A stretch of DNA of 64,000 nucleotides, taken from positions 868,001 to 932,000 of the forward strand of contig JBLDXI010000002.1 of assembly GCA_047495785.1 (NCBI GenBank), written 5' to 3'. This document shows, piece by piece, positions 1-28,402 of this stretch. The notes under the pieces are model-generated. The model was not told the origin of the DNA, made no database searches, and saw only the letters and a program-made list of their open reading frames with translations. The translations under genes were made by a program, and so were the position numbers. Within the stretch, counting starts at the first letter, position 1, and every line of letters begins with the position of its first letter. This DNA is from Lepidodermella squamata (taxonomy: Eukaryota; Animalia; Gastrotricha).

Positions 1-516
1 ATATTTGAATAATTATGAATAGAATATAATCGCGTATTATTTTCTTTAGCGATGAAATTTTATTCCACACCGGCATTTTCATTTGTCGTTAATTCAACTA
101 GGCTGGCATTTCCTTCTATGAAAGCTTCCTTACGCGAAGCTGATTTTCCCTACAGGATTGCATTCAGAGATCTTTCATTTTTACCGATCGCTGTCATTTC
201 ATTTGTCTTCAATAATTTGTAAAAAGTCGCGTTCCGACGCAAAAATGATCCATTGTTATGGGCGCGGCTAATAGTTTCATGTCGATCAAGTCGAAATTGA
301 GGTTTTTAAGTTACGAACGGCCCCCCTCACCGATCGATATCAAAATCAATTTCTTATTTGGGGGAATTTTCTAACAAATATCTCCATATGTTTCACAGGG
401 ATGAAAATCCCTATTTCCAAACGTCGGAAAAGTGAAGAAAGTGGGAGGTGAAGGTCGAGTGACATTTTGTAAAACCCCCTAGAGCCAGTGTGTTAAGTCG
501 ATAGCACAAGATCGTT

Positions 517-1652
517 TTATTTCATCGAGTTTGTTTTATCCAAGATACCGGTTCTGGACTGGTATCCTATTTGAAACTTCAAATAGTTGCGCAAGGCTAA
601 TGGTAGGTAAGGTTTCAGTCCTTCGTCGATAGCCGTCATTCGACTGACGTAACCTATCGGTAAGCTATTGAGCACAGCCATGCGGGCCATGAATTGCAAC
701 CGCATTGGAAAGACAAGGTGAGCCGACGATCTCGCCAGTTCATGTATTTCCCGCATCTCATGACTCTCGAACTTCTTGTACGATGAGTCGCGCTTTGTCA
801 TAAGTAAAACATCGATGAAGTCGACCTCATAGTCGTAAATCGGGAGGCGATTCGCAGCAGCAGTTGCTAGCCTGGCTACTGCGACAAATTGATAATACGA
901 GTGAGAAGTTCGACAACCAGCTAGGACCATCGACTTGATAAACTCGACCATGCTTGAGTCGTCTTCGCCGTCGGGAATCGCACTAATTCGACTGGAAACC
1001 CAGTCAAGTGGTGATTCCAAACAAGCGGATCTCACAGCTTCTTCTGATAAACGCGCGAGGCATTCCGTTTTAGGGTTAATGACTAGCCAAGATGCCGTAT
1101 CGAGCTCGCCACTATGAACCATCCACGTCAAAGTGTGATCACCCCCAAGTTTGACGAGCTGGTCACTGTTTTCTAGGTCCAACAGCTTCATTATGAGATC
1201 GTGTCTTCCTTCGGTGCAGGCGTAAATTGTATAGAATGTGCCGCGTCCGATTTCCAGCAGATTAGCTCCGTTTTTGATCAGTGTCATCAATGCATTATCG
1301 CAGCAGGAACAGCGAAATGCCCGGCATAACGAGCCAATGACGCCGAGTTCGATCAGCTCCTCTGCGAATATTGTGTTGCAATCGGCAAACGCCTTCGTCA
1401 AGTACGACTTCAGGAACTCGGTCTTCGCTAGCCCGGAATCGATTCTCAATATTCTGCTTAGTTTGGAGTAGCTGGAATTGACATGGCCATACTGCAAGTT
1501 ACGCAGAACTCTTCTGATACCACATCGTCTTACCGAGCGAGGGAACAGAAAGTAGTGATGAGTGAGTTCATAGTTGGTCTTGCATTTGTCGAAAATAGCT
1601 AGAAACCTGCTGGTTTGGCGATGATCTTCATTTCGATCCTCCTTTGCTCCAT
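517..1652 (-). pseudogene. Ankyrin-repeat/SOCS-box (ASB-like) protein, copy A; start ATG thrown out of frame by a 28-nt deletion
   Basis: Near-identical to the 21317-22477 copy: ankyrin-like LIKNGANLL..YACTEGRHDLIMKLL and a C-terminal SOCS-box-like PMRLQFMARMAVLNSL...LPLALRNYL. Compared with copy B, 28 nt after ATG GA are missing, so the ATG at 1652 reads MEQRRIEMKIIAKPAGF*. The ORF-track start at 1497 is a TTG. Confidence 0.7.
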
Positions 1653-3348
1653 AGTAAGTGTAAGCTGTGTAAATGTGAAAACATGAATAGTGGAGCTGTG
1701 GTATGACGCCGATACTGTATACCTATTTGTTAAAACCTGACGCAATACGTATGATTCATCTGGCATGAAAATATCACTGCGCGAATGACTCATCTTGCGT
1801 TGGTAGAAGGGCTTAAGAATATGTATCTAAATTGTGCGTTGGAGACTAGAATGATATAGCTGTAGGCTGTCAAGCTGATGTAGAAATTTTATTGTAAAAG
1901 CAGCATCTATGAATTTAAATTCTATATGCGAACTATGAAAGTTGTCAAGATGCGCCAATGTCAAACATGAATCACAATCGGTAAAATAAGCGTGTAAGCG
2001 TAAGCGTAAGTCATTCATTACTTGAAGTAACAAAACATTGATTAGAGCTGAACCTTATCTATCAATACTCAATACTTTTACAGGTGGGAAGATGCTATTA
2101 CTCTGGCAATTTCTTCAATCGATTCTATTTTCGACTACGCTCACGAGATGTTGGCGTGATCTCTCCTCACTTTCATTAATAAGTCAAACAGTCGCCGGAA
2201 CCCCAAGTTATCAAGTTAGAGTTAGCTAACTCTATAAACGCTTTACATTTATACTTTTCGCTTTTCGAATCCGGAAGGTTCGCTGAATTATTTATATGGT
2301 TCAAAGAATGCATGTAATCACACCAGTCCAAAAGAGAATTCCGTAAACCACCAGCGGCCAGACATCAATATTCAAATTCTCAATGTGACTCGCAATGTGG
2401 ACGGCTCCGTTTCAGGATTTATCGACCCGAATCATGAGACGTACTATAGCACGCCGCGGCTACGAAGCTTCCGTAATATTTCCTCGAAAAAATAATGAGC
2501 TAGAAGTGCGTAGAACTTCCAAGTTAGGAATCCGACATCTTTATCGGTAAGAGCTCGTGAGACGGCTGGTTTCAGGGAACATTCAATGCCTGGTGAGTTT
2601 TCGAGGCGTAATTCGAGGCTGATTCCAATGGGTCATAGGAAACCCGGTAGATGGTAATTAGGCCTAACGGAAAAACGTTAACAGCCAAAATGGCGATCGT
2701 CCTTAGTTTTGGCAAGTGAATCCTCGCTCTCATCCTGAATCTTCTCAATAAATAAACCCATCAATTCAAAGAATTTGGACTTGCTAGTATTTTCAGGCAC
2801 GCGCCGCTATTCATGGAAAAAACTGTGAATGAAGACATTTTGTTCGAAAAATTCAATAATTCACTCCTTCTGAACCTTTACCGAATGCATTTTTATCCTC
2901 CACTAACGTTTACAGCGTGCCTCATAGGTAACGCAAGCAAACAAAATATACGGAAAAGGGTTCAGAAAATTTAAAATTAAGTCACATCTTATGACCAGAA
3001 AAATGTAAGAAAATTTAATTAAAAATTAAAAAAAATCAAGAGAATAGTAATATATGAATTATGCAGATTGGCAAAACGCATTTCTTGCACAACTTTTCAA
3101 GGTGGATCTGTTTGAAACAAGCTCTTATGCAAAAATCAGACCATACCTTCTCTTACTTTGCTAAAACCGCGTCTTTGCATCACTTACGGTTGAATAGTTA
3201 TTTAATAAAGCAATGCTAAACAGTTACGCACACTTTATTCTCATCGCTCTCTAACAACAGCATTTGACTATTGAACCAACTTTTGGTGCACAACTTTTGG
3301 TGGTTTTCTTTGATTTTAACCTGCCATCGAGGTGCATGTCGGACAAAA

Positions 3349-4113
3349 CTAATCCACCATCTGCAGTTCATCCGACGTGTACCTTTCGACGTTCGAACCA
3401 GAAACGGTCCAGTTCTGACGCACAAATCCAGAATTCTTCCAATAAAATAGTGCCATTAACACGCATCTCTTTTCAACTTCTGACATTTCCTTCTGATCAT
3501 CGTGGAAACCGTCTGCGCGTGTGTTAAGCGATACCGAATTCCAGACAAGTTTGTTGTTTTGAAACGAGAAACCAGCACCCACGATTTGATCGTCGAGTTC
3601 AACGCCGAACAACGACTTGTAAAGTTTCCCATGAATTTGACCCTCTGCGGCGTCGATGGACATAATCGATGACGATTTCCTCAAATAAATATAACCAGCC
3701 TTACAGTGAACGCCGTTCAAACGCCAATCTGTTTGACCGTTGTACATGAGCAGCATCATTCCGGCATAGTTTTCGCCCAATAATAAGTTGTCTGATTTAC
3801 AGGAAACGTGAAACGTGTCGACAGCAATTTCAATTCCAGGTTTCGGTGGCCCTTTTGAGATGAAAACAGCACAACCGTCACGGAAGAACGCCGAGGGAAT
3901 TCCACCACTAAATAGTCGCAGCACTGAGTCCAGTGTACTCTTCTCTTGGATGTTGTATTGTGCCAACGTCAGATCGTCTTCGAGTTGTTTCCCAGCGAAG
4001 ATTAATCTTTGCTCGTCGGCTGGTATAAGCTGTTTGACCTTGCCGATTGTGTACGACGGTTCAACTTCCAACGTCAACGTCTTCCCTGTGAGAAGTTTAA
4101 CAAAAAGTTTCAT
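3349..4113 (-). CDS. Ubiquitin-like domain fused to an unrecognised ~180 aa domain, copy A
   Basis: N-terminus [20 protein letters not shown]...[12 protein letters not shown]...YNIQEKSTL is ubiquitin-like. It has an 18-nt in-frame deletion (VLYEDG) versus copy B, and the junction is LRLFSG-G rather than LRLRGG. The frame stays open through the C-terminal domain. Confidence 0.85.
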
Positions 4114-4194
4114 GGTCTAAAATGATAGCAAAAACATTATTGATATTATTGCTATTGACAAGATATTGTTTTAAACTAATTAAATATTTGGCAC

Positions 4195-7100
4195 ATGGAG
4201 AATAGAGTTACCAGAGTATTGCTAACTGTTGGAAAACAAAATGCACAGTAAAATCAGGATCAGAATCTGAATCGTCCATGTGATTTACTTGGTAGAAAAA
4301 AATTCAAGACGCGTGCCACTTTTTTCCCTTGATTCATCTTCAATATTAATAATAATCATTCATTAGCAAAATGACTCAGGCAACTAATTTTTGCATGTGA
4401 CCATGTCAATGTTGAAGGACGCAGGACTACCCCGATTTTTTGCCTGAGACACAAAAACACGAATATTCAGAAATTCGGCCCGGCCTCTGCATCAAAAAAA
4501 GATAAATCAAACGACATAATGAGCTCGTGTCTTGATTTTTTTTCTACCAAGTATATCGATGATTTTGCGCTAAAGCCGACCAACGAGAAAAAAATTCCTA
4601 TACAGAGTACTGCGCACAATAAGAAGTACTACGCGCGCATAATATTATAAGATATACTTATAGCCCGCATTCTGTGTGAAAAAAATGAATGTACTGGACA
4701 AATGACCAACAAATATAAGTGCGCTTTTGTGGATGTTACCATGAAATCTTCTGCTTACCTGGTAGAGAACTGTCGAAAGTATCAGGAAATCGATAGAAAA
4801 GCATGTGCAACCGTGGGTTATTCACCGCTAGGCGACTTGAAAGTGATCTGAAAGCGCAAAAACCTTGGAAAAATGCACCCACTGGTGTCTTGAGCGGCGT
4901 TTCTGCGAAAACCAAAATGGGTTCACCCACAGTTTTTTCACATTCCCTAGCCGAGCACATGGAGGGCTTATTAGGGAAGTAAGAAATAGCCAGTTAATAT
5001 GGAGGACATCCACGGCTTTTCAGTATTTTCCCTCCCGGCTTGAAAATCGTGGAAAAAGCGAAAATTGTATGTTTTTAGTCGCTCTTATCTCGAAAACACC
5101 CATGGTTGCACCATAGCTTTTTGTAGTCAAATAGGAGAAGGCACTAGGAGGAAGGTTTTAACAGGGAAAACAGCAAGAACCACCCCAACTTATCCAAGAC
5201 TTTTTCGTCCTGATTAGCACTCACTACGTCACACCCAACACTTCGAAAATGCATGGCCTGGCGTCTTTTGGGGCATTGCTGCAAGAAAGAGCATGGGTTC
5301 AACCACAGTTTTTCACGTCCTTTAGTAGAGCACAAGAAGATCTTACTCAGGAAGTAAGAAATTGCCAGTAAATGCGGTGTTTATCCACGGGTTAAGAGTC
5401 TTTTCTCTCCACATCCGATTCAAGTCCGAATCGAAGAGAAAGTGAGGATTTTTCATCTTTCATGGCACTTATCTTGAAAAAACCCATGGCTGCACCACAA
5501 GTTTTTGTATTCAAACAGTAGAGGAGATTGAGAAGAAGGTTTCAAAAGAGAAAACAGCACGAACCACGACAACTTATCCACGACTTCTTCGCCTTGATGG
5601 ACAATCACATTTTAAGCTCAAAATCGAACTTCAAAACTGGGCTATTCACCTTACCTTACGCGGCAGAGCCCTTATTTCACCTGTAACAAGTTGAATGAAG
5701 CGCATACTTCTTATAAAATAGCAAATATGCGGGTGCTACCATGATTTGCCATGATTTTCCATTCGGTCCCAGACCGCGGTAACAAGACGGTTATGGTAAG
5801 GAGTCATCCGATTTCAATCTCTCAATGAAGTCAAGGTATCTATGGACTGACGTATTAAAGATGCATTTTCGATCATTTTTAGCAACGGTAATTGCTTCCT
5901 TGTATCTGGTACGTTGGTCTTTTCGTATTCTCAAAAACTTCCATGCAAGTTGCAACTTGATTTTGCTCATTCCTTTTGCGAATGCTCCTTATGGAGCGCT
6001 AATTGCTGGGCTCAACTTAGCTTTTGTTATCCTTCCATTTGTAGGGTGTAGAGTGGAGTGTGGTTCGGAAGTGCAAGAAGCCGTGGATAATAACGATTTG
6101 AATCAGCATTTCACCTCCAAAGAAAGGTTGCCTTGTTCCCCTCATTAGAAGGAAATGAGAGAAAACTTGGCTTACATAGTCTGAGTGATAGAGGAAAAGA
6201 AAAACCGCCGACAGCGCCATCTGCTTCATCATGTCGGTGTATTGTGTGGTATTCAAGAAAATCAGCTGGAGTGAACACTTTTGCAACGATGGATCGAAAC
6301 GTTTTCAAGTCGGATTAGCGGTTGTTATAGAAAGAAAAGATGTTCCTTGAAACCTCTATCGACGGAGCGGTCGACAGTAGGTGGGTCAATCGCACAATAG
6401 AGGCCGGCGAGGGACACGCAAGAAATCGTTTGTGTTGTGGAATAATGTAGCTTAACGACAGCATTCTCTTCCGCACTGGTCAGATTAGAGAAAAATGGCC
6501 ATCCGTCGCGGTTTTTTTTATTACGGACGGTAAACATCAGCCAAATTCATTAAATTGACTGATCTGAGAAGAGCGATAGATTCAAGTGCTGCTACAGTCC
6601 CTCGGGATAACTTTTCCCATTGGCGCTAAAACGTGATACAGTGCCATCTCATGTGGCTAAAATCCTTGCTTTTTAGTAATTTCAATCAACGCTGCACTCA
6701 ACTCAACTTTCGAAACCGCGGAAACACCTTGATCCGTCATTTTCCCATATTTTCCGTCAAATGCGTCTATCGCGTTCTATTGTTGGCGCCGCCCACCGTC
6801 AACTTTTTTGTTTCCTGTTCAAAGAACTAACTAGCTTGCAAGTGCCTTTAGATAGGAAGCATCATCTTCGGGTAGCTGAGTTTGTGACCAATGTATGTAA
6901 GTTGGGTAGGTTACATTTGGTTAGGACCAGAGGGCAGACTCCCGTAGCCCATCTCCTTTTGGTCCGATGTTGTGAGCATTTTAAGCACAGGGGCCCCGCC
7001 AAGGCAGGAGACGTCGGTCACTCCAAGTCTCTGGTAAACCAAGACCAAGTCTCCCAATTTGCTGGTAGCTCGTTAGCTAAAGCTTTTCTAGACGATCGTT

Positions 7101-10100
7101 TTGCACTCGCTGAGAGTCCGCTTTCGACGATAGCAGGGCGTACGCGACGCGACACAACGTTTGCCGTGAATTACGTTGCCCGCTACCGCCACGGGGAGGC
7201 TGCCGTTGTCGCTTGAACAGCAGTCAGCTCTACGATCTAACACTCATTTGGGTAATTTTGTCAATAGGGCTTTCCATATTAGCAGTGTGGAACTTTAGCT
7301 CAGGGGATGGAAGGTTTTAGCGAACTGAATCGTTCAACCAAACAATGGCTGAAACTCGAAGGCGAGAGAATTAGCATGGAGAATAGAGTTACCAGAGTAT
7401 TGCTAACTGTTGGAAAACAAAATGCACAGTAAAATCAGGATCAGAATCTGAATCGTCCATGTGATTTACTTGGTAGAAAAAAATTCAAGACGCGTGCCAC
7501 TTTTTTCCCTTGATTCATCTTCAATATTAATAATAATCATTCATTAGCAAAATGACTCAGGCAACTAATTTTTGCATGTGACCATGTCAATGTTGAAGGA
7601 CGCAGGACTACCCCGATTTTTTGCCTGAGACACAAAAACACGAATATTCAGAAATTCGGCCCGGCCTCTGCATCAAAAAAAGATAAATCAAACGACATAA
7701 TGAGCTCGTGTCTTGATTTTTTTTCTACCAAGTATATCGATGATTTTGCGCTAAAGCCGACCAACGAGAAAAAAATTCCTATACAGAGTACTGCGCACAA
7801 TAAGAAGTACTACGCGCGCATAATATTATAAGATATACTTATAGCCCGCATTCTGTGTGAAAAAAATGAATGTACTGGACAAATGACCAACAAATATAAG
7901 TGCGCTTTTGTGGATGTTACCATGAAATCTTCTGCTTACCTGGTAGAGAACTGTCGAAAGTATCAGGAAATCGATAGAAAAGCATGTGCAACCGTGGGTT
8001 ATTCACCGCTAGGCGACTTGAAAGTGATCTGAAAGCGCAAAAACCTTGGAAAAATGCACCCACTGGTGTCTTGAGCGGCGTTTCTGCGAAAACCAAAATG
8101 GGTTCACCCACAGTTTTTTCACATTCCCTAGCCGAGCACATGGAGGGCTTATTAGGGAAGTAAGAAATAGCCAGTTAATATGGAGGACATCCACGGCTTT
8201 TCAGTATTTTCCCTCCCGGCTTGAAAATCGTGGAAAAAGCGAAAATTGTATGTTTTTAGTCGCTCTTATCTCGAAAACACCCATGGTTGCACCATAGCTT
8301 TTTGTAGTCAAATAGGAGAAGGCACTAGGAGGAAGGTTTTAACAGGGAAAACAGCAAGAACCACCCCAACTTATCCAAGACTTTTTCGTCCTGATTAGCA
8401 CTCACTACGTCACACCCAACACTTCGAAAATGCATGGCCTGGCGTCTTTTGGGGCATTGCTGCAAGAAAGAGCATGGGTTCAACCACAGTTTTTCACGTC
8501 CTTTAGTAGAGCACAAGAAGATCTTACTCAGGAAGTAAGAAATTGCCAGTAAATGCGGTGTTTATCCACGGGTTAAGAGTCTTTTCTCTCCACATCCGAT
8601 TCAAGTCCGAATCGAAGAGAAAGTGAGGATTTTTCATCTTTCATGGCACTTATCTTGAAAAAACCCATGGCTGCACCACAAGTTTTTGTATTCAAACAGT
8701 AGAGGAGATTGAGAAGAAGGTTTCAAAAGAGAAAACAGCACGAACCACGACAACTTATCCACGACTTCTTCGCCTTGATGGACAATCACATTTTAAGCTC
8801 AAAATCGAACTTCAAAACTGGGCTATTCACCTTACCTTACGCGGCAGAGCCCTTATTTCACCTGTAACAAGTTGAATGAAGCGCATACTTCTTATAAAAT
8901 AGCAAATATGCGGGTGCTACCATGATTTGCCATGATTTTCCATTCGGTCCCAGACCGCGGTAACAAGACGGTTATGGTAAGGAGTCATCCGATTTCAATC
9001 TCTCAATGAAGTCAAGGTATCTATGGACTGACGTATTAAAGATGCATTTTCGATCATTTTTAGCAACGGTAATTGCTTCCTTGTATCTGGTACGTTGGTC
9101 TTTTCGTATTCTCAAAAACTTCCATGCAAGTTGCAACTTGATTTTGCTCATTCCTTTTGCGAATGCTCCTTATGGAGCGCTAATTGCTGGGCTCAACTTA
9201 GCTTTTGTTATCCTTCCATTTGTAGGGTGTAGAGTGGAGTGTGGTTCGGAAGTGCAAGAAGCCGTGGATAATAACGATTTGAATCAGCATTTCACCTCCA
9301 AAGAAAGGTTGCCTTGTTCCCCTCATTAGAAGGAAATGAGAGAAAACTTGGCTTACATAGTCTGAGTGATAGAGGAAAAGAAAAACCGCCGACAGCGCCA
9401 TCTGCTTCATCATGTCGGTGTATTGTGTGGTATTCAAGAAAATCAGCTGGAGTGAACACTTTTGCAACGATGGATCGAAACGTTTTCAAGTCGGATTAGC
9501 GGTTGTTATAGAAAGAAAAGATGTTCCTTGAAACCTCTATCGACGGAGCGGTCGACAGTAGGTGGGTCAATCGCACAATAGAGGCCGGCGAGGGACACGC
9601 AAGAAATCGTTTGTGTTGTGGAATAATGTAGCTTAACGACAGCATTCTCTTCCGCACTGGTCAGATTAGAGAAAAATGGCCATCCGTCGCGGTTTTTTTT
9701 ATTACGGACGGTAAACATCAGCCAAATTCATTAAATTGACTGATCTGAGAAGAGCGATAGATTCAAGTGCTGCTACAGTCCCTCGGGATAACTTTTCCCA
9801 TTGGCGCTAAAACGTGATACAGTGCCATCTCATGTGGCTAAAATCCTTGCTTTTTAGTAATTTCAATCAACGCTGCACTCAACTCAACTTTCGAAACCGC
9901 GGAAACACCTTGATCCGTCATTTTCCCATATTTTCCGTCAAATGCGTCTATCGCGTTCTATTGTTGGCGCCGCCCACCGTCAACTTTTTTGTTTCCTGTT
10001 CAAAGAACTAACTAGCTTGCAAGTGCCTTTAGATAGGAAGCATCATCTTCGGGTAGCTGAGTTTGTGACCAATGTATGTAAGTTGGGTAGGTTACATTTG

Positions 10101-10556
10101 GTTAGGACCAGAGGGCAGACTCCCGTAGCCCATCTCCTTTTGGTCCGATGTTGTGAGCATTTTAAGCACAGGGGCCCCGCCAAGGCAGGAGACGTCGGTC
10201 ACTCCAAGTCTCTGGTAAACCAAGACCAAGTCTCCCAATTTGCTGGTAGCTCGTTAGCTAAAGCTTTTCTAGACGATCGTTTTGCACTCGCTGAGAGTCC
10301 GCTTTCGACGATAGCAGGGCGTACGCGACGCGACACAACGTTTGCCGTGAATTACGTTGCCCGCTACCGCCACGGGGAGGCTGCCGTTGTCGCTTGAACA
10401 GCAGTCAGCTCTACGATCTAACACTCATTTGGGTAATTTTGTCAATAGGGCTTTCCATATTAGCAGTGTGGAACTTTAGCTCAGGGGATGGAAGGTTTTA
10501 GCGAACTGAATCGTTCAACCAAACAATGGCTGAAACTCGAAGGCGAGAGAATTAGC
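4195..10556 (+). repeat. Exact tandem duplication, unit 3,181 bp (4195-7375 = 7376-10556)
   Basis: All ORFs recur with offset 3181 (e.g. 4736/7917, 6761/9942). The junction GAGAATTAG-C-ATGGAGAATAG has only 1 nt of microhomology. Confidence 0.95.
4286..4553. mobile_element. ~270 bp MITE with ~25 bp TIRs (duplicated at 7467-7734)
   Basis: TACTTGGTAGAAAAAAATTCAAGAC ... GTCTTGATTTTTTTTCTACCAAGTA. It is absent from the mirror position in the right arm (ATGTGA-TA-TCGATG). Confidence 0.8.
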
Positions 10557-12196: not shown

Positions 12197-12370
12197 TCAC
12201 ATAGCTGATTCTAATTGTGATCCTGATTTTATTGTGCATTTTGCTTTATAACAGTTAGCAATACTAGGTATGGTAACTCTATTCTCCATGTGCCAAATAT
12301 TTAATTTGTTCAAAACAATATCTTGTCAATAGCAATAATATCAATAATGTTGTTGCTATCATTTTAGACC

Positions 12371-17247: not shown

Positions 17248-17353
17248 AATTCGGCTTGAATAAAATGGCTGATAAAATATTCGAAAAAGGAAATTGCTTT
17301 TGATGAAACGTTGGTATTCAATGAAGATTGAAATTTTCACCTTTCAGCTATGG

Positions 17354-17360
17354 TTTTATA
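17354..17360 (-). promoter_or_regulatory. Candidate TATA box of precursor 1
   Basis: TATAAAA ~110 nt upstream of the ATG, also present upstream of the 27902 paralogue; it is CAATAAAA in the 25774 copy. Confidence 0.35.
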
Positions 17361-18149: not shown

Positions 18150-18804
18150 ATTTTCATTAAAAAAAATGTAACCATTTTGATAGACACGTTTTCATGAGTT
18201 CAATAATACATAAGTTCCCATATGAAATGGGCAGCATTAGATGAACACGTGCTGTTTACAAAATAAGCGCACGCGACTGGCTATTTTCACAACTGTTCGT
18301 TTGAAATATTTATGTGATTCAAGCACAAAGTTTAAATCAAATTGATTATGAGAGAACTACTGTTGTCATCGCCTTCTACCATAAAAAGCTCCCCTGATCA
18401 ATCCGACGTGGAGACTTCGGCCCGGGTGCGAGGAAAGGCGGTAGTCTATGTCTACTCAGAAAACCGGTTCCCCGACTGGGCGACGGCATCGGCTAGTTGA
18501 ATGCCCTTTGATTGAAATCTTGCCCTTGAAAAGCGGTAAAGGCCGTAAAAAGACTATATCCTTGTTTTACACGGGTGCACACTACATGGCCCTAGGCCGC
18601 TGAATTTTTCTTGATAGAACAGACTGAATTAACTGACTTTCCATTCTCGGATGTTAAATCTAACAAGAGTAATGACGAGTATATGGAAATAAATCATTTT
18701 AGGCGCGGTTGCTGCTTATAACGAAATATGTAACGAAATATGTATACATATTTGAACTCAGGAAAGCGTGTCTATCAAAATGGTTAAATTTTTTTAATGA
18801 AAAT
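18150..18804. mobile_element. Nested inverted-repeat element inside the left MULE TIR
   Basis: ~50 bp imperfect TIRs: ATTTTCATTAAAAAAAATGTAACCATTTTGATAGACACG... / ...CGTGTCTATCAAAATGGTTAAATTTTTTTAATGAAAAT. Confidence 0.65.
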
Positions 18805-19097
18805 GGACCATAGTTTTTTCGTCAGCAATATCCTTCTTTTCGCAGCAAAATCCTTTTTCTCACAGCAATTTTTTTTTTCGCGAGGAACATCTTTTATTTG
18901 CAGCACATCCAGTTTTATTTCAGGAGAAAAGAAAAAAAAATTGCAAGTTGAAATTGAAATTAACCACGCGATTCAGCGTCGCGTGTATAGTTAGCATCAT
19001 CACATGTCAGTAGCATTGTCAGTAAATTATTGCTAAATTATTCGGAAAAAATGTCAGCTTTTTCTGAAATGAACATTTCCCAATTTTCCACGTCACC

Positions 19098-20822
19098 CTA
19101 TTTCCCCAGGGCCATGTAGTGATTGTTGCAAAAAAAAACATGGTATGTTGGCTCAGCGGCGTAACTAGGTCTACCAAACTGATGGGGCCAGCCTTGGGGC
19201 CAGCACATCTTTTCTACGTATTTGCGGCCCCGAATTTTTCAGACCACAGGGTCCCCCCTGTTGTACCCTGAGAGTATTTTTCCAGCTGGTGGGGCCGGTG
19301 CCCCCCCCCCCTGGCCCCCCCTTAGTTACGCCCCTGTGTTGGCTTCCGCCCGGCACCGCGATGGCCGACGGGCCTGATGACGTAAGGGACAGATTCCATT
19401 TGATGGACCTCAATATTGATATTACGGCTCACTGCGATTGCTGTAAGGGCCTCCTCCCCGCCCCAGTAGCCTAGTTCCGACAGGCGTAGAACTGCAAATA
19501 AAGTTAATCAAGTTTTGCACACATGAAACGCGACGCAAATTAATTTACCAAATTCCAAATAATCTTCCAAGCCGTAGGGCGTATTCTCCTTGTCACCCGG
19601 GTGAATCCCGGCGAAGTAAGGCATCACCAATTCAGCGTTGTCGGTGAGCCAGTCTACCGCCTCAGCCCCCAGCAATGCATGGTCGTCCTCCGAACCGTGG
19701 AGGAGTAGTGCCATCGCACGGAAGGCACAGTTCCCGTCACCCAGAACATCGTGCACGGCGAATCGGTCGTATCGGTCACCGTCACGAGGGCAACCGTCAC
19801 CAGCAGGCGGAGACTTCTGAACTTGTTTGCGATTCTTTTTGGATTTAATCGGCGAAGGTTCCGGAGAAAGCAGTGAAGATTCGGTGGACGTAGCAGATGA
19901 ACGACCTGCCTTTCTGCGCAAAGCTCGACGCTTACGAGTCTTCGCTTTTGATTTGATCGGCGAAGGTTCAGGAGAATGTAGCGACGATTCGTTCGACGTA
20001 ACAGGTGACCGAGCTGCCTTGCTGCGCTTACGAGACTTCGGTTTCTCGAGACCGTTATGTTCTGTCAAGAAACAGCCTGAAATTGCCATCTTTTTCTTCG
20101 TTTTTCTTGACTTCTTCGCCTACTGACTCAACAGCTTCGCCTTCTTTCTCTTCGACAGCTTCGTCATCATATCCGCCTTCATCATTGCAATCTTCAGCCG
20201 AATCCGAATCAAATTTAAGCGCCTTAGATGCCTTTTTCGGCCGGCCGCACGAGGCACCACCAAGAGAGGCAGCTCGATGCTCACTCGGAATTGCTTCCAA
20301 CCCGGTGACATGTCGCACCATAACAGAGTGAACGCAATGCGGTTTTTTGGAGCCGTGGAAGCAGGTGCAGGTTGTGCCAGTCTCTGTGTTGTGAACCAGA
20401 AAGACGTTGGAAATCGACCATTTGTAGGCGTCATAGCATCTCCAGTTGCTTTCTTGTCGATTTGTGACGCAGCGATCTAGCGAATCGGTTTCGACATGAC
20501 AACTGGTGACGACGTAGAAGTCCCCATCGACATTGAAAACCTTCATGTGCGGCTTCTTTTTTATTGGATTTTCTTGGCAACACTTTGCAAGTTTCAGGTT
20601 TATCCAGGCACGCCGGTACAAGGTGGCGGGAACTGGGTGACCTTCAGCGAACTGCGGCGATTCCGTCGATTCTCCACCCAGTTGTCGAAGCAACTTGCCC
20701 AGAAGGTTGGCAATTTGAGCTTCAACGCAGTACGGCTCGTCAAGATTGGTCGGTAACTCCGAATGTGCTTCAACCCATTCTTTCAGCTGTAATGTGTTCA
20801 TAGTGGAGACATTTTCAGCCAC
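19098..20822 (-). pseudogene. MULE-derived gene: transposase N-terminal remnant + SWIM zinc finger + OTU-family cysteine protease; disrupted
   Basis: SWIM CTCFHGSKKPHCVH. OTU: VLGDGNCAFRAMA, then after an intron (~19492-19548) YWGGEEALTAIAVSRNINIEVH...HVFFCNNHYMAL*. There is a frame break near 20055-20089 and a MITE in the last exon; no DDE core seen. Confidence 0.75.
19154..19336. mobile_element. hAT-type MITE (183 bp) with 8-bp TSD
   Basis: TIRs CAGCGGCGTAACTA / TAGTTACGCCCCTG; TSD TGTTGGCT at 19146-19153 and 19337-19344. Removing it restores the OTU reading frame. Confidence 0.9.
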
Positions 20823-21316
20823 ACCAGCCGCACTTGCCGCGCTTGCTTGCCCAGCAGCTTTAATTTGTAGTAGTAAGCAGATCTACTTTTTTAATTTGTT
20901 TTTTTCCACGTGCCCATACTTTTCAACCTTTTTAAGGTGTTGTTACGACTAAACACGCGACGCTGAATCGCGTGGTTAATTTCAATTTCAACTTGCAATT
21001 TTTTTTCTTTTCTCCTGAAATAAAACGGGATGTGCTGCAAATAAAAGATGTTCCTCGCGAAAAAAAAAATTGCTGTGAGAAAAAGGATTTTGCTGCGAAA
21101 AGAAGGAATTTGCTGACGGTTAAAGTATAATTCATGAAAATCGATATTTTAAAATTTGCTGCTGAAAAAAGTATCTGCTGCTGGGAAAAGTATCTGCTGC
21201 AGAAAACAGTATTCTGCTGCTGAAAAAAGAAATCTGCTGCAGAAAAAAGAGCTATCCTTCCAAACGTCGGAAAAGTGAAGAAGTCGGAGAAGTCGATAGC
21301 ACAAGATCGTTTTATT

Positions 21317-22477
21317 TCATCGAGTTTGTTTCATCCTAGATAAAAGTTCTGGGGACTGGTATCCCATTTGAAACTTCAAATAGTTGCGCAAGGCTAATGG
21401 TAGGTAAGGTTTCAGTCCTTCGTCGATAGCCGTCATTCGACTGACGTAACCTATCGGTAAGCTATTGAGCACAGCCATGCGGGCCATGAATTGCAACCGC
21501 ATTGGAAAGACAAGGTGAGCCGAAGATCTCGCCAGTTCATGTATCTCCCGGATCTCATGACTCTCGAACTTCTTGTACGATGAGTCGCGCTTTGTCGAAA
21601 GTAAAACATCGATTAAGTCGACCTCATAGTCGTAAATCGGGAGGCGATTCGCAGCAGCAGTTGCTAGCCTGGCTACTGCGACAAGTTGATAATACGAGTG
21701 AGAAGTTCGGCAACCTGCTAGGACCATCGACTTGATAAAAGTGACTACTCTTGGGTCATCTTCGCCCTCGGGAATCGCGCTGATTCGACTCGAAACCCAA
21801 TCAAGAGGCGATTCCAAACAAGCGGATCTCACAGCTTCTTCTGATAAACGCGCGAGGCATTCCGTTTTAGGGCTAATGACTAGCCAAGATGCCGTATCGA
21901 GCTCGCCACTATGAACCATCCTCGTCAAAGTGTGATCACCCCCAAGCTTGACGAGCTGGTCACTGTTTTCGAGGTCCAACAGCTTCATTATGAGATCGCG
22001 TCTTCCTTCGGTGCAGGCGTATGTCAAAATTGTGTGGCCGCGTTCCTTTTCCAGCAGATTAGCTCCATTTTTGATTAGTGTCATCAATCCATCGTCGCAG
22101 CAGGAACAGCGAAAAGCCTGGCATAAGGAGCCAATGACGCCGAGTTCGATCAGCTCTTCTGCGAAAATTGTATTACAATCGGCAAACGCCTTTTTTAAAT
22201 ACGACTGTAGCAATTCGGTCTTCAATAGCCCGTAATCGATTCTCAATATTCTGCTGAGTTTGGAGTAGCTGGAATTGATGTGGCCATACTGCAAGTTACG
22301 TAGAACTCTTCTGATACCACGGCGTCTCACCGAGCGAGGGAACAAAAAGTAGTGATGAGTGAGTTCGTAGTCGGTCTTGCATTTGTCGAAAATAGCTAGA
22401 AATCTGCTGGTTTGGCGATGATCTTCATTTCGATCCTCCTTTGCTTCGACGGTCGCAAAATCAAAATCAAAATCCAT
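21317..22477 (-). CDS. Ankyrin-repeat/SOCS-box (ASB-like) protein, copy B, intact, intronless
   Basis: Ankyrin-like RGHTILTYACTEGRRDLIMKLL and GGDHTLTRMVHSGELDTASWLV; C-terminal SOCS-box-like segment ending LPLALRNYL. Likely start MDFDFDF at 22477; the frame is open upstream to 22615. Confidence 0.75.
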   Translation of the reverse strand: MDFDFDFATVEAKEDRNEDHRQTSRFLAIFDKCKTDYELTHHYFLFPRSVRRRGIRRVLRNLQYGHINSSYSKLSRILRIDYGLLKTELLQSYLKKAFADCNTIFAEELIELGVIGSLCQAFRCSCCDDGLMTLIKNGANLLEKERGHTILTYACTEGRRDLIMKLLDLENSDQLVKLGGDHTLTRMVHSGELDTASWLVISPKTECLARLSEEAVRSACLESPLDWVSSRISAIPEGEDDPRVVTFIKSMVLAGCRTSHSYYQLVAVARLATAAANRLPIYDYEVDLIDVLLSTKRDSSYKKFESHEIREIHELARSSAHLVFPMRLQFMARMAVLNSLPIGYVSRMTAIDEGLKPYLPLALRNYLKFQMGYQSPELLSRMKQTR

Positions 22478-22694
22478 AGTTAAGTGTAAGCTGTGCAAGT
22501 GATAACATGAATAGTAGAGTTGTGGTATTGGGGCGTGTGGTGTATACTTTTTTGCTGAAAACTGACGCAATACGTGAGCAGGCATGGTATGATTCATCTT
22601 GCAGGAAAACATCAATGTGCATGACTCATCTTGCGTTGGTAGAAAGGCTTACGAATATCTAAATTATGCGTTGGCTCTAAATTATCTAAATTAA

Positions 22695-23420
22695 GGCTCG
22701 CAGCACGGTTCCAAAATCGACGCGAGATCTGTCATAAACCGATCGCAATCGCCATGTGTTTCATGAGCTTCGTAAAAGACACTTTTTGCATACTTTTTGG
22801 GGTCGAGCAAAGCTCGGCTTCAAAATATCAGTATTTGTGATGTCCTCAAGCGTCCTAAACACTAAATAACTCGACTCGATTGCTTGAAAAACCGACCTGT
22901 CCGGCAGAATTTGTTGATAGAACGAGAATCCAGCTGGTAGACACTGAACTCCAGCGTGTCTCTTTACGTAGGACTTCCTATCCTGGTGCATGAAGTTGAA
23001 AAATTCAGACCAGTTACTTTCAGGCAGGTCTTCGTGTATGGAAAAAATTGATTTCGTAGCTTCAAAACCGTATTTATCGCGAATTGCGGTGATGATCTCA
23101 GAAACGGCAGCTGAGCTATTAGCCCCAGTGCTGCTGCCGAAGTCTGCGATGATCAGGGGATGCGTCAACTCGGCCGAGTGAGCGTCGATTCCGTATGAAG
23201 TTGAAAAGTTCAGACCAGTTATTTATACAGGTCTTCATGTATGGAATAAATTCATTTCGTTGCTTCAAAGCCGTATTTTTCGCGAATTGCGGTATTATTT
23301 TAGAAACGGCAGCTGAACTGTAGCCACCGTGCTGCTGCCGAAGTCGGCGATGACCAGTGGATGGGCAAATTCGCCTGAGTGGGCGTCGATTCCTTTTTTA
23401 GCCAAGGTTCGAGCTATATT
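22695..23420 (-). pseudogene. Rearranged SABATH methyltransferase pseudogene
   Basis: Fragments match 13973-15019 (IIADFGSSTGANSS..HEDLPESNW) with internal deletions, plus a second diverged 5' fragment at ~23193-23420. Confidence 0.85.
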
Positions 23421-23507
23421 CGAGCACTAGGCGCCTCCTTTGATGACATCAAGGAATCTTTCCGGTAAGATTGGAAATTTGAATAAGCTGAGCTGCAAAC
23501 TGATAGT

Positions 23508-23554: not shown

Positions 23555-24195
23555 ACAATTTTTACGATAGCCTCTGGAAACTGGAAACCGAACAGTTTAC
23601 AGGCAACCATACCGAATTCGAATTACACTGCTTTCACTTTGATTTTAACATCAAGTTCTCACATGGGATTTACGATTCCCAGAGTTGAGAGTCGATTTGA
23701 CAACATGGAGAAAGCTCGAATAATAATGCCGATTGCTTGGAACATTGAATTGGACAAAGATGGAAACTTTTGGATAATATATAGCGAAAGGCGAAAGGTT
23801 TCCATACAATTTTTGATGAGCTATTACTATCCATCTACCACTGGCAAAATTTTCAAATAGGAGGAAAATCTTGAAACTCGCTGGGTCCTTCGCTTTCAGT
23901 CCAGTTTTATTGCCAGGTTGCCGTAAACAAAATTAGTCCGAAAGCGAAACTTTATCATTTAACTGGATTATTTATTCATACGGTAAGGCGGTAGTAATGA
24001 AGAAGCGATCAATTCTATGATTGCGAGGAGAAAAGTTAGACTTTTTCCAGCCATCATTGAGTATGAAATATAAAAAGCTTATGCTTTATGAGAGGAATTA
24101 GGGTGAAAGGAATAAAAACAACACGGGCGAAAGCACATAATACAAGTCTCTTCCCTTGTAATGGAATAAAACAGAGCAGCCATCGCTCAAATTAT

Positions 24196-25774
24196 TCAAG
24201 CCTGCTCATAGGCGGCTTCACCACGTTTGGCCTCCTCGTAGCCAGCTTCACCGCGCTGAGCCTCTTCGTAGCCAGCTTCACCACGTTTGGCCTCTTCGTA
24301 GCCAGCTTCCCCGCGCTTGGCTTCTTCGTAGGCGGCTTCACCACGCTTGGCCTCTTCGTAGCCAGCTTCCCCGCGCTTGGCTTCTTCGTAGCCAGCTTCC
24401 CCGCGCTTGGCTTCTTCGTAACCAGCTTCCCTGCGCTTTGCCTCTTCGTAGGCAGCTTCACCACGTTTGGCCTCTTCGTAGCCAGCTTCCCCGCGCTTGG
24501 CTTCTTCGTAACCAGCTTCCCTGCGCTTTGCCTCTTCGTAGGCGGCTTCACCACGCTTGGCCTCTTCGTAACCAGCTTCCCTGCGCTTTGCCTCTTCGTA
24601 GCCAGCTTCCCCGCGCTTGGCTTCTTCGTAACCAGCTTCCCTGCGCTTTGCCTCTTCGTAGGCGGCTTCACCACGCTTGGCCTCTTCGTAGCCAGCTTCC
24701 CCGCGCTTGGCTTCTTCGTAACCAGCTTCCCTGCGCTTTGCCTCTTCGTAGGCGGCTTCACCACGCTTAGCCTCTTCGTAGCCAGCTTCCCTGCGCTTTG
24801 CTTCCTCATAGGCAGCTTCACCGCGCTTGGCCTCTTCGTAGCCAGCTTCCCCGCGCTTGGCTTCTTCGTAACCAGCTTCCCTGCGCTTTGCCTCTTCGTA
24901 GGCGGCTTCACCACGCTTGGCCTCTTCGTAGCCAGCGTCCCTTCGCTTTGCCTCTTCGTAGGCGGCTTCACCGCGCTTGGCCTCCTCGTAGCCAGCTTCA
25001 CCACGCTTTGCCTCTTCGTAGCCAGCTTCCCTGCGCTTTGCCTCTTCGTAGGCGGCTTCACCACGCTTGGCCTCTTCGTAGCCAGCTTCCCCGCGCTTGG
25101 CTTCTTCGTAACCAGCTTCCCTGCGCTTTGCCTCTTCGTAGGCGGCTTCACCACGCTTAGCCTCTTCGTAGCCAGCTTCCCTGCGCTTTGCTTCCTCATT
25201 GGCAGCTTCACCGCGCTTGGCCTCTTCGTAGCCAGCTTCCCCGCGCTTGGCTTCTTCGTAACCAGCTTCCCTGCGCTTTGCCTCTTCGTAGGCGGCTTCA
25301 CCACGCTTGGCCTCTTCGTAGCCAGCGTCCCTTCGCTTTGCCTCTTCGTAGGCGGCTTCACCGCGCTTGGCCTCCTCGTAGCCAGCTTCACCACGCTTTG
25401 CCTCTTCGTAGCCAGCTTCCCTGCGCTTTGCCTCTTCGTAGGCGGCTTCACCACGCTTGGCCTCCTCGTAGCCAGCTTCACCACGCTTTGCCTCCTCGTA
25501 GCCAGCTTCCCTGCGCTTTGCCTCTTCGTAGGCGGCTTCACCGCGCTTGGCTTCCTCGTAGCCAGCTTCACCGCGCTTTGCCTCCTCGTAGCCAGCTTCA
25601 CCGCGCTTGGCCTCTTCGTAGGCGCTCTCACGCCTCATGGTCTCCCCGAGCGGATTCGAAAGGACCGCTGCTATCTATTTTCAAAACAAAATCATCATTG
25701 CCGTTAGTTAAAAGATATGCTTGTCAATCGCAAAAACTCACAAGGCATGCTGCTATCGTTAGCTTGCTGATCAT
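24196..25774 (-). CDS. Secreted repeat-peptide precursor 2 (exons 25774-25742, 25674-24196; 503 aa; 48 units)
   Basis: MISKLTIAACL | GTGAGT..ATAG | IAAVLSNPLGETMRRESAYEEA-(KR-[G/R]EA[A/G]YEEA)n, ending YEQA*. Confidence 0.88.
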
Positions 25775-27564
25775 TTTCGGCTTGAATTTAAGGGCTGATG
25801 GAATATTCGAAAAAGGAAATAGCTTTTGATGAAATGTTGGATTTGTATGAAGATTGAAATTTTCACTTTTTCCGCTACGGTTTTATTGGCGAGCGATGGC
25901 GTTCATTTCATCAGTTGCGCTAGATGAATTGTCTATTATGCTTGCGATCCAGGGTGCCGTGAGCCATGGCACCGCTCCAAGCAAGTTCAGCTGTCATTTC
26001 CTTTTCACGTGCCAGCCGCAAAAAACTTTTTTTAACATCATAAATTAACAATAATATTTGAACAATTATGAATAGAATATGATCGCGCTTTATTTTTTTC
26101 AGCGACGAAATTTCATTCCACACCGACATTGTCATTTGCCGGTAATTCAATAACCAGCCATTCACTTCTCCGAATAACTCCTTACGCAAAGCTGATTTTT
26201 CTTTCATGTTTACAGTCAGAATTCTTTCATTTCTACCGATCGCTGTCATTTCATTTCAATTCCAATAATTTGTAAAACGTCGCGTTCCGACGCAAAAATG
26301 ATCCATTGTTATAGGCCGGGCCAATAGTTTCAAGTCGATCAAATCGAAAATTGAGATTTTTAAGTTACGAACACGCCTTTTCACGCTAGTTAATTTAGAT
26401 TTTCACGATGGGAAATCAATGCACAGTTGAAAGGTCTCAAGTCCATGGCATAAGTATACAGCTTATACATAATAGGACTTTTTGACGCTTGGTTCACCCT
26501 TTAGACTTTGGCTGAAATTACGTAGACGTTAAATTGTCTCTTTGAGCTGAATTGACGATATCTGATAGGACGCCCAAAAACCAAGACCTCCGGTTCCTGA
26601 TTCTGAGCGCGAGTTTAGTTTACTCCAAATTTAGGCATAAATCAAGGAAAAATTGCACGAACTTAAAGAACCCGTTCAGAATTCTGTGCCTTCAGATTTT
26701 TCCCAAAGATTGACGTAGCTGGTAAAGCAGCAAAACTTCAAATGAGGTAGCAAATAGGACGGGGAGCGTGGACGTGATTTGCGACGATACGGTATGCTTG
26801 TTTTCATTCGTGAAAATCAATTTCCGATCACAGCCGCTCAGGGGGCGGGTGTCGTCATGTCGACTTCGGCGCAGAATTGCTGCATCAGGTTTCGCATGAG
26901 GTATCATTTCCCGCAGCCCCTCAGCAACACGTACGCCATCATGCTCTTAGAAAGCATCTCGCCATTCCGACCTGGGCCCATCGCTCCAAGTGGAACCATC
27001 ATCGGCGGGGTTGCAATAGGTGCAGGCTTGATCATATACAGGCGGAAGGTACTGATTTTTTATCCTGATTCAGTTAAATTCGAGATCCATCGAGTGTGTT
27101 TGGTGACAGATGCAGACATTTGGCAGATTACATTTGGCAATTGAACGGGATTTTGAGCATCGCAGGTGAGGTCTCGATGCAAAATCAACACAAAAACGTG
27201 AAATGGAGCTCGCAATTGCACGCAGTTTCCGATACTATGTAGGATTCAGGTTATCCCCAAACTAGCATAAATTTTTGGCTAACCGGAGACGAAGAATGTT
27301 CGATTTTAAAATGGCTAGAAACTTGGTTTTTGGTGAAAAACTGAGGATCCAAATTAAAACCTTCGCCGGAGGAAAGCAGTAGAACACGTTTCACTTCGTT
27401 AATTAGCTGCGATGTGGCTCCATTAATATTTATTCACGCAGCAAGGCGGTTGTAATAGCTTGAAGAAGCGATTAATTACATGAATACATCAATTGCAATA
27501 AGAGTTTTTCCAGCAGTTCTTGAGATAGTAAAATGAGACGATTTTGATTTTTGAGATCAATCGA

Positions 27565-27902
27565 TTAAACTACAAAGTTAGTATTGACAAAAGCAGTCAC
27601 CTCAGACAGAATACTATTTTTCACACTAGCTGATAATTGGGAAAAGCTTTCCCCACGCTTCGCCTCCGGGTAGTTTTCTACAACGCGCTCGGCTTCCTGG
27701 TAGTTGTCCCCGCCACGTTGGGCTTCTTGGTAGTTGGCTCCCTGATATTGGCTCTCGCGCATCATGCTCTCCGTGATTGGATACGAAATGACGGCTGCTA
27801 CCTATTTCAAAAAAGCATTCATCATCGCAGCGTTATCTGATTATGTGTTCATCAATTGCAGAAACTAACCAAGCAGGCTGCTATCATTAGCTTGTAGATC
27901 AT
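27565..27902 (-). CDS. Short precursor paralogue 3 (exons 27902-27870, 27801-27565; 89 aa)
   Basis: MIYKLMIAACL | GTTAGT..ATAG | VAAVISYPITESMMRESQYQGANYQEAQRGGDNYQEAERVVENYPEAKRGESFSQLSASVKNSILSEVTAFVNTNFVV*. Confidence 0.82.
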
Positions 27903-28402
27903 CTCCCGGCTTTAAATAAAAGGGCTGATAAAATATTAGAAAAAAAATTCCTTTAATGAAATTAGATGTGATGAATGAAGATTATCTCAATATGCAGCCA
28001 CGTTTTATAGGCTAACGATCGCGTTTATTTCAGTAGTTTTGCCATATGACTTTCATGATCCCTTGCTTGCGATCCAGGTTGCCGTTATAATGATCGCACC
28101 GCTCCAAGTAAGTTCAGCTGTCGTTTCTTCTCGCGTGTAAGTTCAACTCCCTTATTCTCACAAAGTTTTTTTTGTTTTTCGCTGTCACTTGGGGTCAAAT
28201 TTTTAGGTAAAATGATTTTTTGGGACAATTGGCTTGTAACTGATACCCTGCATTATATTATCGATAGCTCAAAGATTGCAGAATCCAGCGAATCGAGTTC
28301 AAATCTCGATGTGACCATGGTTACTTTTTTGGCCTGTAAGCATCGATGCGGATCGTGGCGGAAAGCATCAACTAGTCGGAACTGGATATTCAAGTCAGCC
28401 TA

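Follow-up and report, generated by a model that had tools for sequence, protein, structure and literature searches.

Tandem segmental duplication probably explains a repeated precursor, methyltransferase and ankyrin/SOCS-box gene order in the gastrotrich Lepidodermella squamata

The window, by which we mean the whole 64,000-nucleotide stretch analysed (contig JBLDXI010000002.1, positions 868,001 to 932,000, forward strand), contains the order precursor, Methyltransf_7 (SABATH-family) methyltransferase and ankyrin/SOCS-box gene twice on the minus strand, as an earlier note on this DNA had observed and as collinear self-BLAST pairs confirm. Inspection of the neighbouring sequence, which that note had proposed as a way to find more units, revealed a partial unit C adjoining the window on the left, in which the precursor is intact, the methyltransferase is broken and the ankyrin gene is missing. 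The array sits within a 2.9-Mb contig. Its features are given below by position in the window.

25774–21317, minus strand: unit A, with precursor, methyltransferase and ankyrin/SOCS-box gene
24196–25774, minus strand: PRE-A, precursor (exon 1 25774–25742, intron 25741–25675, exon 2 25674–24196), 47 units
22688–23441, minus strand: MT-A, methyltransferase pseudogene, 5′ part duplicated, residues 148–240 and 306–357 missing
21317–22477, minus strand: ANK-A, intact ankyrin/SOCS-box-like gene of unit A
18000–21290, no strand assigned: nested transposon insertion separating units A and B, with ORFs at 19508–20089 (OTU-like motif) and 20055–20822
17247–517, minus strand: unit B, with precursor, methyltransferase and ankyrin/SOCS-box gene
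16030–17247, minus strand: PRE-B, precursor (exon 1 17247–17215, intron 17214–17149, exon 2 17148–16030), 36 units, signal peptide
13973–15019, minus strand: MT-B, sole intact Methyltransf_7 gene of the array, encoded in one exon and lacking a signal peptide
12371–13181, plus strand: second ubiquitin-fusion (UBF) copy, broken into two overlapping frames by a frameshift or by sequencing error at a run of T
4194–12197, no strand assigned: transposon block, two 100%-identical direct 3182-bp copies and an inverted 1.25-kb arm
3349–4113, minus strand: intact UBF copy, ubiquitin-like domain (Pfam ubiquitin, 7.8e-19) fused to an unknown 180-aa domain
517–1704, minus strand: ANK-B of unit B, frame open, all in-frame start codons lost
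1–318, minus strand: PRE-C upstream region, gene body left of the window
27565–28141, minus strand: short precursor relative (ORF 27565–27765), about 4 degenerate units and a unique tail, without methyltransferase or ankyrin partner
56245–56406, plus strand: second short precursor relative

The UBF family, the two transposon blocks, the third unit's broken methyltransferase and the two short precursor relatives are additions to the earlier description.

Homology between units extends beyond the genes. Self-BLAST pairs 15762–17803 with 23925–26338 (precursor, 85%), 14643–14956 with 22900–23414 (methyltransferase 5′ part, 85–96%) and 495–1842 with 21290–22674 (ankyrin gene, 78–93%), all three collinear and on one strand, and the spacer between precursor and methyltransferase retains weak collinear homology. 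The units thus lie head to tail with collinear DNA homology in genes and intergenic DNA alike, as in tandem segmental duplication, and this shared homology points to a single contiguous tandem duplication as their origin. Identity is 94–98% between B and C and 85–93% between A and B, which also differ in structure; unit C, unlike unit B, has neither an ankyrin gene nor transposons.

The transposon blocks at 4194–12197 and 18000–21290 inflate the units, whose additional length consists of dispersed repeat DNA, and the sequence indicates an ancestral unit of about 5–6 kb that was later enlarged by transposon insertions. The element at 4194–12197 has dozens of copies on many contigs (78–100% identity), each laid out as arm, core and inverted arm. 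The insertion at 18000–21290 has inverted ends and 20-bp subterminal arrays, and parts of it recur on many contigs at 92–99% identity. The UBF family forms a further component of units B and C. Its two copies in the window (3349–4113 and 12371–13181) are an inverted pair by self-BLAST, its members are almost confined to the array locus, and an Atlas search with the C-terminal domain returned no usable match.

All three precursors share the repeat unit (G/R)EA(A/G)YEEAKR, present 47, 36 and 31 times in A, B and C, respectively. The third copy had been predicted about 270 bp left of the window, and an intact gene is indeed present there with 31 repeats and its exon 1 ATG 267 bp left of the window. 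The upstream match from which it was predicted is real but shorter than the 1–430 first given, covering only 1–285 (95% identity to 17518–17803) and 1–318 (85% identity to 26054–26372). Searches used exon 2, and the 11 codons of exon 1 were read directly. The precursors have a recognisable core, with a signal peptide and 31–47 KR-bounded units; KR/KRR dibasic sites separate the predicted units, Gly before KR is absent, and each predicted peptide has four carboxylates. Codon variability in PRE-B is 0.25 at third positions and 0.01–0.04 at positions 1 and 2, a pattern indicative of strong purifying selection on the peptide. Precursor-like loci number at least 12 in the whole genome. The short relative at 27565–28141 is 72–77% identical to the long precursors in its 5′ region and falls among the short forms in the tree. 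The precursors resemble FMRFamide-type multi-copy prohormones in their signal peptide, near-identical short units, predicted dibasic cleavage sites and purifying selection, but differ from them in the absence of a C-terminal amidation Gly and in strongly acidic units.

MT-B is a clear member of its family. It matches Pfam PF03492 at 2.7e-33 and 116 bits (cut-off 29.8) over profile positions 12–312 of 335, in line with the identity proposed earlier. Among solved structures its best match is the mycobacterial fatty acid O-methyltransferase 5f2k (Mycobacterium marinum, 1e-25) rather than a SABATH enzyme from plants. In that alignment IADFGSSTGANS, EDLP, SFYQQILP and SLHW are in register, so that the SAM-binding motifs and the carboxylate-holding Trp are conserved; the alignment does not reach the N-terminal Gln motif, which by eye matches Y-x3-S-x2-Q. 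Unlike 5f2k, MT-B comes from an animal and has about 20 family copies around it in the genome: Methyltransf_7 gives 27 matches at about 20 loci, and separate tandem arrays of these genes occur on contigs C17, C30, C31, C48, C50 and C74. A word search found a single relative of MT-B outside the genome (P0001, 36% identity), and a metagenome scan with P0001 gave no match. The earlier note's remark that the methyltransferase has no signal peptide is borne out, since direct reading of the MT-B translation found no hydrophobic signal segment at its N-terminus. In MT-A, the Pfam match is confined to the N-terminal 100 residues, tblastn gives only pieces, and self-BLAST detects an internal duplication (22990–23192 and 23195–23393). 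The SABATH/Methyltransf_7 family is known for small-molecule substrates (PMC10193983). We infer that MT-B is a carboxyl methyltransferase whose substrate is a small lipophilic acid rather than the precursor peptides.

The ankyrin/SOCS-box assignment is less direct. ANK-A falls below the Pfam cut-offs for both Ank_2 (E 0.0023, 18.9 bits, cut-off 27.3) and SOCS_box (E 0.066, 13.9 bits, cut-off 23.5), although the latter match spans profile positions 2–39 of 39, and its matches to designed ankyrins among PDB sequences are weak (E 0.005–0.05). Transitive support comes from eight matches of its C-terminus within its own genome that coincide with SOCS_box matches over the cut-off (e.g., C74:557821, C74:563703 and C7:2769745), and further support from its protein-language-model neighbours in the Atlas, which are Ank/SOCS-box clusters (0.96–0.98). 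Judged from these sequence matches and neighbours, the domain calls of the earlier note appear broadly right. The AF2 model of ANK-A with ANK-B is poor (pLDDT 44), and a word search for ANK-A relatives outside the genome found none. ASB proteins, which combine ankyrin repeats with a SOCS box, are cullin-5 substrate receptors. ANK-A may resemble them in a helical repeat body with weak ankyrin signal and a C-terminal SOCS-box-like motif, through which it would be part of the genome's expansion to more than 150 SOCS boxes, and is unlike them in that both domains score under Pfam cut-offs in the direct test. ANK-B is 87–88% identical to ANK-A in amino acids over residues 28–422, with dN/dS of about 0.36. 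Its 5′ end has suffered deletions of 29 bp and 13 bp, and the ATG at 1652, formerly given as its start, is out of frame; the starts given for the precursors (17247 and 25774), MT-B (15019) and ANK-A (22477) hold.

The linkage of the three families does not recur elsewhere in the genome. The 10 kb around each of the precursor loci on contigs C19 (two loci), C54, C29, C40, C25, C24 and C10 and at C2:986-995k contain neither a methyltransferase nor an ANK-A homologue, and the homology of dispersed precursors to the array ends at the precursor block. A tree of 5′ regions unites A, B+C and C29+C40 in a single well-supported clade, within which the three-way split is unresolved; B is thus equally close to A and to the partner-less C29/C40 copy. 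Both partners are absent at this sister-level precursor and at four further precursor loci. Seen from the other side, the closest methyltransferase paralog is on C31 (81%) and the closest ankyrin paralogs are on C75 (85%) and C15 (82%), and in genome-wide match lists none of these contigs has a match to the other two families; partner absence around the paralogs on C31, C15, C75, C48, C42 and C74 is read from those lists. On C42 a weak precursor-like match (E 9e-6) lies 14 kb from a methyltransferase paralog; it does not have the conserved 5′ region of the precursor family and, on sequence grounds, is probably compositional. An ankyrin ORF (L008:1908-2936) next to the precursor on C29 was weighed as a case of conserved linkage but discarded, as it is not similar to ANK-A (E 0.82) and a SOCS box is absent.

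The earlier note had offered two readings, a biosynthetic-cluster-like locus in an animal or partners carried along as passengers. Under the first, a RiPP-like tailoring cassette would have been amplified as a functional unit, with the methyltransferase esterifying the released octapeptides at their Glu side chains or at the C-terminal carboxyl and the ankyrin/SOCS-box protein acting in regulation. An intact predicted carboxyl methyltransferase does lie 1 kb from a multi-copy precursor that has a signal peptide and units bounded by KR, the four carboxylates of each peptide could in principle be its substrates, and such adjacency is mildly unexpected by chance (about 0.06 precursor–methyltransferase adjacencies expected from about 12 precursor loci × 30 kb, about 20 methyltransferase loci and 121 Mb, a post hoc calculation). 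Fungal ustiloxin-type clusters, in which a Kex2-cut repeat precursor goes with a methyltransferase likewise without a signal peptide, offer a possible parallel; these ustiloxin/dikaritin clusters are defined by DUF3328-type oxidases and have other tailoring genes besides. By analogy, the array may be likened to them in its signal peptide, dozens of short Tyr units bounded by Lys-Arg and adjoining SAM-dependent methyltransferase. The likeness would stop there, as the array contains neither DUF3328-type oxidases nor other tailoring genes, its methyltransferase appears to be of the small-molecule SABATH/FAMT type, and its linkage is not conserved at paralogous precursor loci.

We consider such a cassette very improbable. 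Confined to one locus and produced by a single duplication, the linkage amounts to one observation, and co-localisation of precursor and tailoring enzyme is not kept at the other precursor loci examined, where sister-level and more distant copies do without both partners. The methyltransferase family is known for acting on small molecules (PMC10193983), and the nearest solved relative of MT-B is a fatty-acid enzyme. The methyltransferase is without a signal peptide, the unit holds no other tailoring enzyme, and the methyltransferase is broken in two of three units. That the FAMT-like MT-B methyl-esterifies the acidic Tyr octapeptides of the neighbouring precursors is, taken by itself, highly improbable. 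If true, it would be the first animal RiPP-like cluster described and the first SABATH-family peptide substrate, and new peptide chemistry would become accessible through a real animal cluster of precursor and tailoring enzyme; what we observe speaks against one. An assembly artefact, in which alleles or collapsed haplotypes were wrongly set in tandem, is more remote still. Contig C135 repeats 13973–22264 at 100% identity, so the assembly retains alternative copies, and the 3182-bp direct repeat at 4194–10556 is itself 100% identical. However, A and B diverge by 7–15% and are built differently, divergence between B and C is 2–6% with ankyrin gene and transposons absent from C, repeat numbers are unequal between units, and the array lies inside a 2.9-Mb contig; on these grounds we rejected the artefact.

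The passenger reading fits best: precursors are intact in all three units, methyltransferases in one of three and ankyrin genes in one of two, and each of units A and B has, as noted before, lost a different partner (MT-A is broken, and deletions removed the start of ANK-B). Amplification may have been driven by selection for precursor dosage with the methyltransferase and ankyrin genes hitch-hiking, which differs from our preferred explanation only in adaptive versus neutral fixation. Three intact precursors beside decaying partners, strong purifying selection on the peptide, high repeat numbers that differ between copies and many further precursor-family copies would agree with this, but neutral tandem duplicates are common in the genome (e.g., SOCS-box, Methyltransf_7 and fucosyltransferase genes) and three copies are a small sample, and we regard dosage selection as unlikely.

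Our results suggest that the array probably arose in this animal genome by a tandem segmental duplication that is young and restricted to the one locus, and that its partners are passengers sharing no pathway. A unit of about 5–6 kb would have been duplicated head to tail at least twice, giving three units, and would have carried, mostly on one strand, a secreted repeat-peptide precursor, a cytosolic Methyltransf_7 enzyme, probably a UBF gene and an ankyrin/SOCS-box gene. Transposon insertion may have come next, followed by decay of redundant copies through deletion and frameshift, while purifying selection on the peptide would have kept all three precursors intact. Precursor, methyltransferase and ankyrin genes belong to unrelated, independently expanding families, so the repeated gene order would follow from their physical linkage alone, and the methyltransferase and ankyrin genes are presumed passengers of duplication. 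One intact methyltransferase could nevertheless serve all precursors in trans, and decay of the extra copies is compatible with a functional link. With head-to-tail units of differing ages, later transposons and pseudogenised redundant copies, the array is like tandem segmental duplications that undergo birth-and-death decay and differs from an ordinary one in nothing essential; its unit merely carries three unrelated lineage-expanded families. It offers a worked example of how one segmental duplication can repeat a gene order while adding no second observation of linkage.

Several side results may interest specialists. Methyltransf_7 genes number about 20 in this animal, and a fatty-acid methyltransferase from bacteria is their nearest relative. 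The genome has at least 150 SOCS-box matches over the Pfam cut-off among 212 candidates, and its 121 Mb contain more than 150 SOCS-box genes. Finally, the acidic Tyr-peptide precursor family evolves through internal repeat gain and gene duplication.

Self-BLAST, tblastn and an alignment to the adjacent 20 kb on the left of the window define an array, read right to left on the minus strand, of genes for a secreted repeat-peptide precursor (PRE), a Methyltransf_7 (SABATH-family) methyltransferase (MT) and an ankyrin/SOCS-box-like protein (ANK). The order precursor, methyltransferase, ankyrin occurs twice, in units A and B, as the earlier note had read it, and its expectation of a further precursor in the neighboring sequence is borne out by unit C:

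25774-24196, minus: precursor, unit A (PRE-A)
23441-22688, minus: methyltransferase pseudogene, unit A
22477-21317, minus: ankyrin/SOCS-box gene, unit A (ANK-A)
21290-18000: 3.3-kb nested transposon between A and B
17247-16030, minus: precursor, unit B (PRE-B)
15019-13973, minus: intact methyltransferase, unit B (MT-B)
12371-13181, plus: ubiquitin-fusion gene, unit B
12197-4194: transposon block, unit B
4113-3349, minus: ubiquitin-fusion gene, unit B
1704-517, minus: ankyrin/SOCS-box gene, unit B (ANK-B)
Left of window: intact precursor with 31 repeats, unit C
Left of window: methyltransferase pseudogene, residues 181-357 only, with frameshifts, unit C
Left of window: a ubiquitin-fusion gene and a fragment of another, no ANK, unit C

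The spacers between precursor and methyltransferase in A and B share collinear patches at 79-86% identity, and the units therefore stem from one contiguous segment. Identity is 94-98% between B and C and 85-93% between A and B. Each of the two large inserts is a dispersed repeat, present on other contigs in many near-identical copies, and the ancestral unit measured ~5-6 kb. On a short contig (C135), 13973-22264 is repeated at 100% identity save for a ~300 bp indel in the transposon; this contig is probably an alternative, uncollapsed haplotype, and copy counts in the L. squamata genome should allow for contigs of this kind.

The array very probably reflects local tandem duplication of a segment holding precursor, methyltransferase, ubiquitin-fusion and ankyrin/SOCS-box genes, the last three carried along as passengers; their redundant copies are decaying while the precursors are retained. 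The earlier note had proposed passengers of selection for precursor dosage. Its passenger half fits the data, as methyltransferase and ankyrin copies are decaying while precursors stay intact; that selection for precursor dosage fixed the copies seems unlikely. Its other reading, a RiPP-like cluster in which the methyltransferase would act on peptides of the neighboring precursor, we regard from the sequence as very improbable. The single intact methyltransferase could work in trans, and carboxylates abound in the peptides, but the known substrates of SABATH-family enzymes are fatty acids and small aromatic or cyclic acids (PMC10193983), and nothing positive goes past a single precursor-methyltransferase adjacency that is mildly unexpected by chance. 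A biosynthetic-cluster-like locus also fits poorly with the other precursor loci, where the partners are missing within 10 kb, including at a copy on C29/C40 that is as close to unit B as unit A is.

Since A, B and C all copy one segment, they amount to one observation of linkage. Across the 121-Mb assembly (151 contigs), searched with exon 2 standing for the spliced precursor, the precursor family maps to C2 (the array itself, a pair of short forms elsewhere in the window, and 986-995k), C19 (two loci), C54, C29, C40, C25, C24 and C10. Within 10 kb either side of each precursor locus outside the window, unit C alone has an MT or ANK-A homologue at E < 1e-4, and in the dispersed copies homology to the array does not extend past the precursor block, which in unit B spans 15763-17666. 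The stretches C29:2966001-2986000 and C40:220001-240000 are ~92% identical over the whole 20 kb, precursor gene included, and were therefore scored as one locus; either a large segmental duplication or two very divergent haplotypes would account for them. An ankyrin ORF beside the C29 precursor was rejected as an ANK partner, being unrelated to ANK-A and having no SOCS box. A maximum-likelihood tree built from the 5′ region outside the repeats joins A, B+C and C29+C40 in one clade (support 99/99) as a three-way polytomy, so a precursor related to B at the same level as A occurs without either partner. The nearest methyltransferase paralog is at C31:1624287 (81%) and the nearest ankyrin paralogs, both with stops, are on C75 (85%) and C15 (82%); the genome-wide match lists place neither of the other two families on these contigs.

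Family pairs within 15 kb, with rough chance expectation from family densities and occurrences outside the array
MT-SOCS: expected ~0.7; observed one, at C74
Precursor-SOCS: expected ~0.6; observed one, at C10
Precursor-MT: expected ~0.06; none certain observed

The low last expectation is what makes the precursor-methyltransferase adjacency mildly unexpected, as a single post-hoc case. On C42 a weak precursor-like match lies 14 kb from a methyltransferase; it lacks the conserved 5′ region of the family and is probably compositional. The stretch G000:C74:555344-574147 holds three SOCS-box genes at 7-15 kb from Methyltransf_7 fragments. The match lists have no other MT-SOCS neighborhood outside the array, and with >150 SOCS boxes in the genome chance could account for this one.

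The 30-bp-period repeat regions at 16040-17105 and 24215-25621 encode, on the minus strand, 36 and 47 units of (G/R)EA(A/G)YEEAKR, respectively. Both genes have a TATA-like box and an 11-codon exon 1 (MICKLTIAACL in PRE-B, MISKLTIAACL in PRE-A), followed by a 66-67 nt GT-AG intron and an exon 2 that finishes the signal peptide and runs into the repeats. Several frames are open on both strands; in the minus-strand frame, variability is 0.24-0.25 at third positions vs. 0.01-0.04 at positions 1 and 2, which identifies this frame as the one under purifying selection. Short relatives with the same 5′ region lie at 27565-27765 (minus) and 56245-56406 (plus). They have merely 3-4 degenerate units (xNYQEAxR) and a common tail (S..N.I.S.VT.FV..NFV), and may picture the family before repeat amplification.

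MT-B (ORF 13973-15019, minus) scores 116 bits against Pfam Methyltransf_7. Among solved structures its best match is a Mycobacterium fatty acid O-methyltransferase (5f2k, 1e-25), with which SAM-binding motifs and the carboxylate-binding Trp motif align in register; the plant salicylic acid enzyme 1m6e matches at 4e-12. MT-B has no N-terminal hydrophobic segment, in agreement with the earlier remark that it lacks a signal peptide. The sole relative found outside the genome by word search (P0001) is 36% identical. Within the genome the family has 27 matches above cut-off at ~20 loci, many of which form separate arrays.

ANK-A (ORF 21317-22477, minus) is accepted as a divergent ASB-like gene, though its direct Ank_2 (E 0.0023) and SOCS_box (E 0.066, whole profile length) matches are both subthreshold. 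Designed ankyrins match it weakly, eight of its own-genome matches overlap SOCS_box matches above Pfam's cut-off, and its language-model neighbors are Ank/SOCS-box clusters (0.96-0.98); an AlphaFold two-sequence model was too poor for use (pLDDT 44). SOCS_box has at least 150 matches above cut-off among 212 candidates in the genome. ANK-B keeps an open frame of ~400 codons in which 29-bp and 13-bp deletions took out every in-frame ATG, and the ATG at 1652, previously taken as its start, is out of frame. ANK-A vs. ANK-B dN/dS is ~0.36, some poorly aligned end residues included.

The ubiquitin-fusion family, part of duplicated units B and C, joins a ubiquitin-like domain to a ~180-aa domain without a match in Pfam or Atlas. 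It is nearly confined to the array (3349-4113, minus; 12371-13181, plus; L002:5496-6263, plus, in the stretch carrying unit C), with two distant copies on C32.

The transposon at 4194-12197 has 1.25-kb terminal inverted arms and no long ORF. A 3182-bp unit is tandemly doubled at 100% identity (4194-7375 and 7375-10556), followed by the inverted arm at 10945-12197; the perfect tandem copy could alternatively be an assembly error. Copies on C20, C3, C32, C25, C21 and C43 are 98-100% identical, indicating very recent activity. The nested insert at 18000-21290 has inverted ends and 20-bp subterminal arrays (18021-18138 and 21157-21249). Its ORFs carry an OTU-protease-like motif, GDGNCAFRA (19508-20089), and a SWIM-like CxC...CxH motif (20055-20822), and neither meets any Pfam threshold; C17 and C11 carry further copies of the ORF part, 97-98% identical.

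The window spans G000:C2:868001-932000. SOCS boxes and spliceosomal introns mark the genome as that of an animal, and the genes in the right half of the window are likewise ordinary animal ones, namely those for a Cys-loop receptor, an ANF-receptor protein, a trypsin and two fucosyltransferases. The latter, of the GT10 type, form an intact inverted pair at 94% identity (49394-50802 / 53322-54730):

49484-50752, minus: GT10 fucosyltransferase gene 1, intact
53372-54700, plus: GT10 fucosyltransferase gene 2, intact
45344-46077: extra GT10 fucosyltransferase fragments
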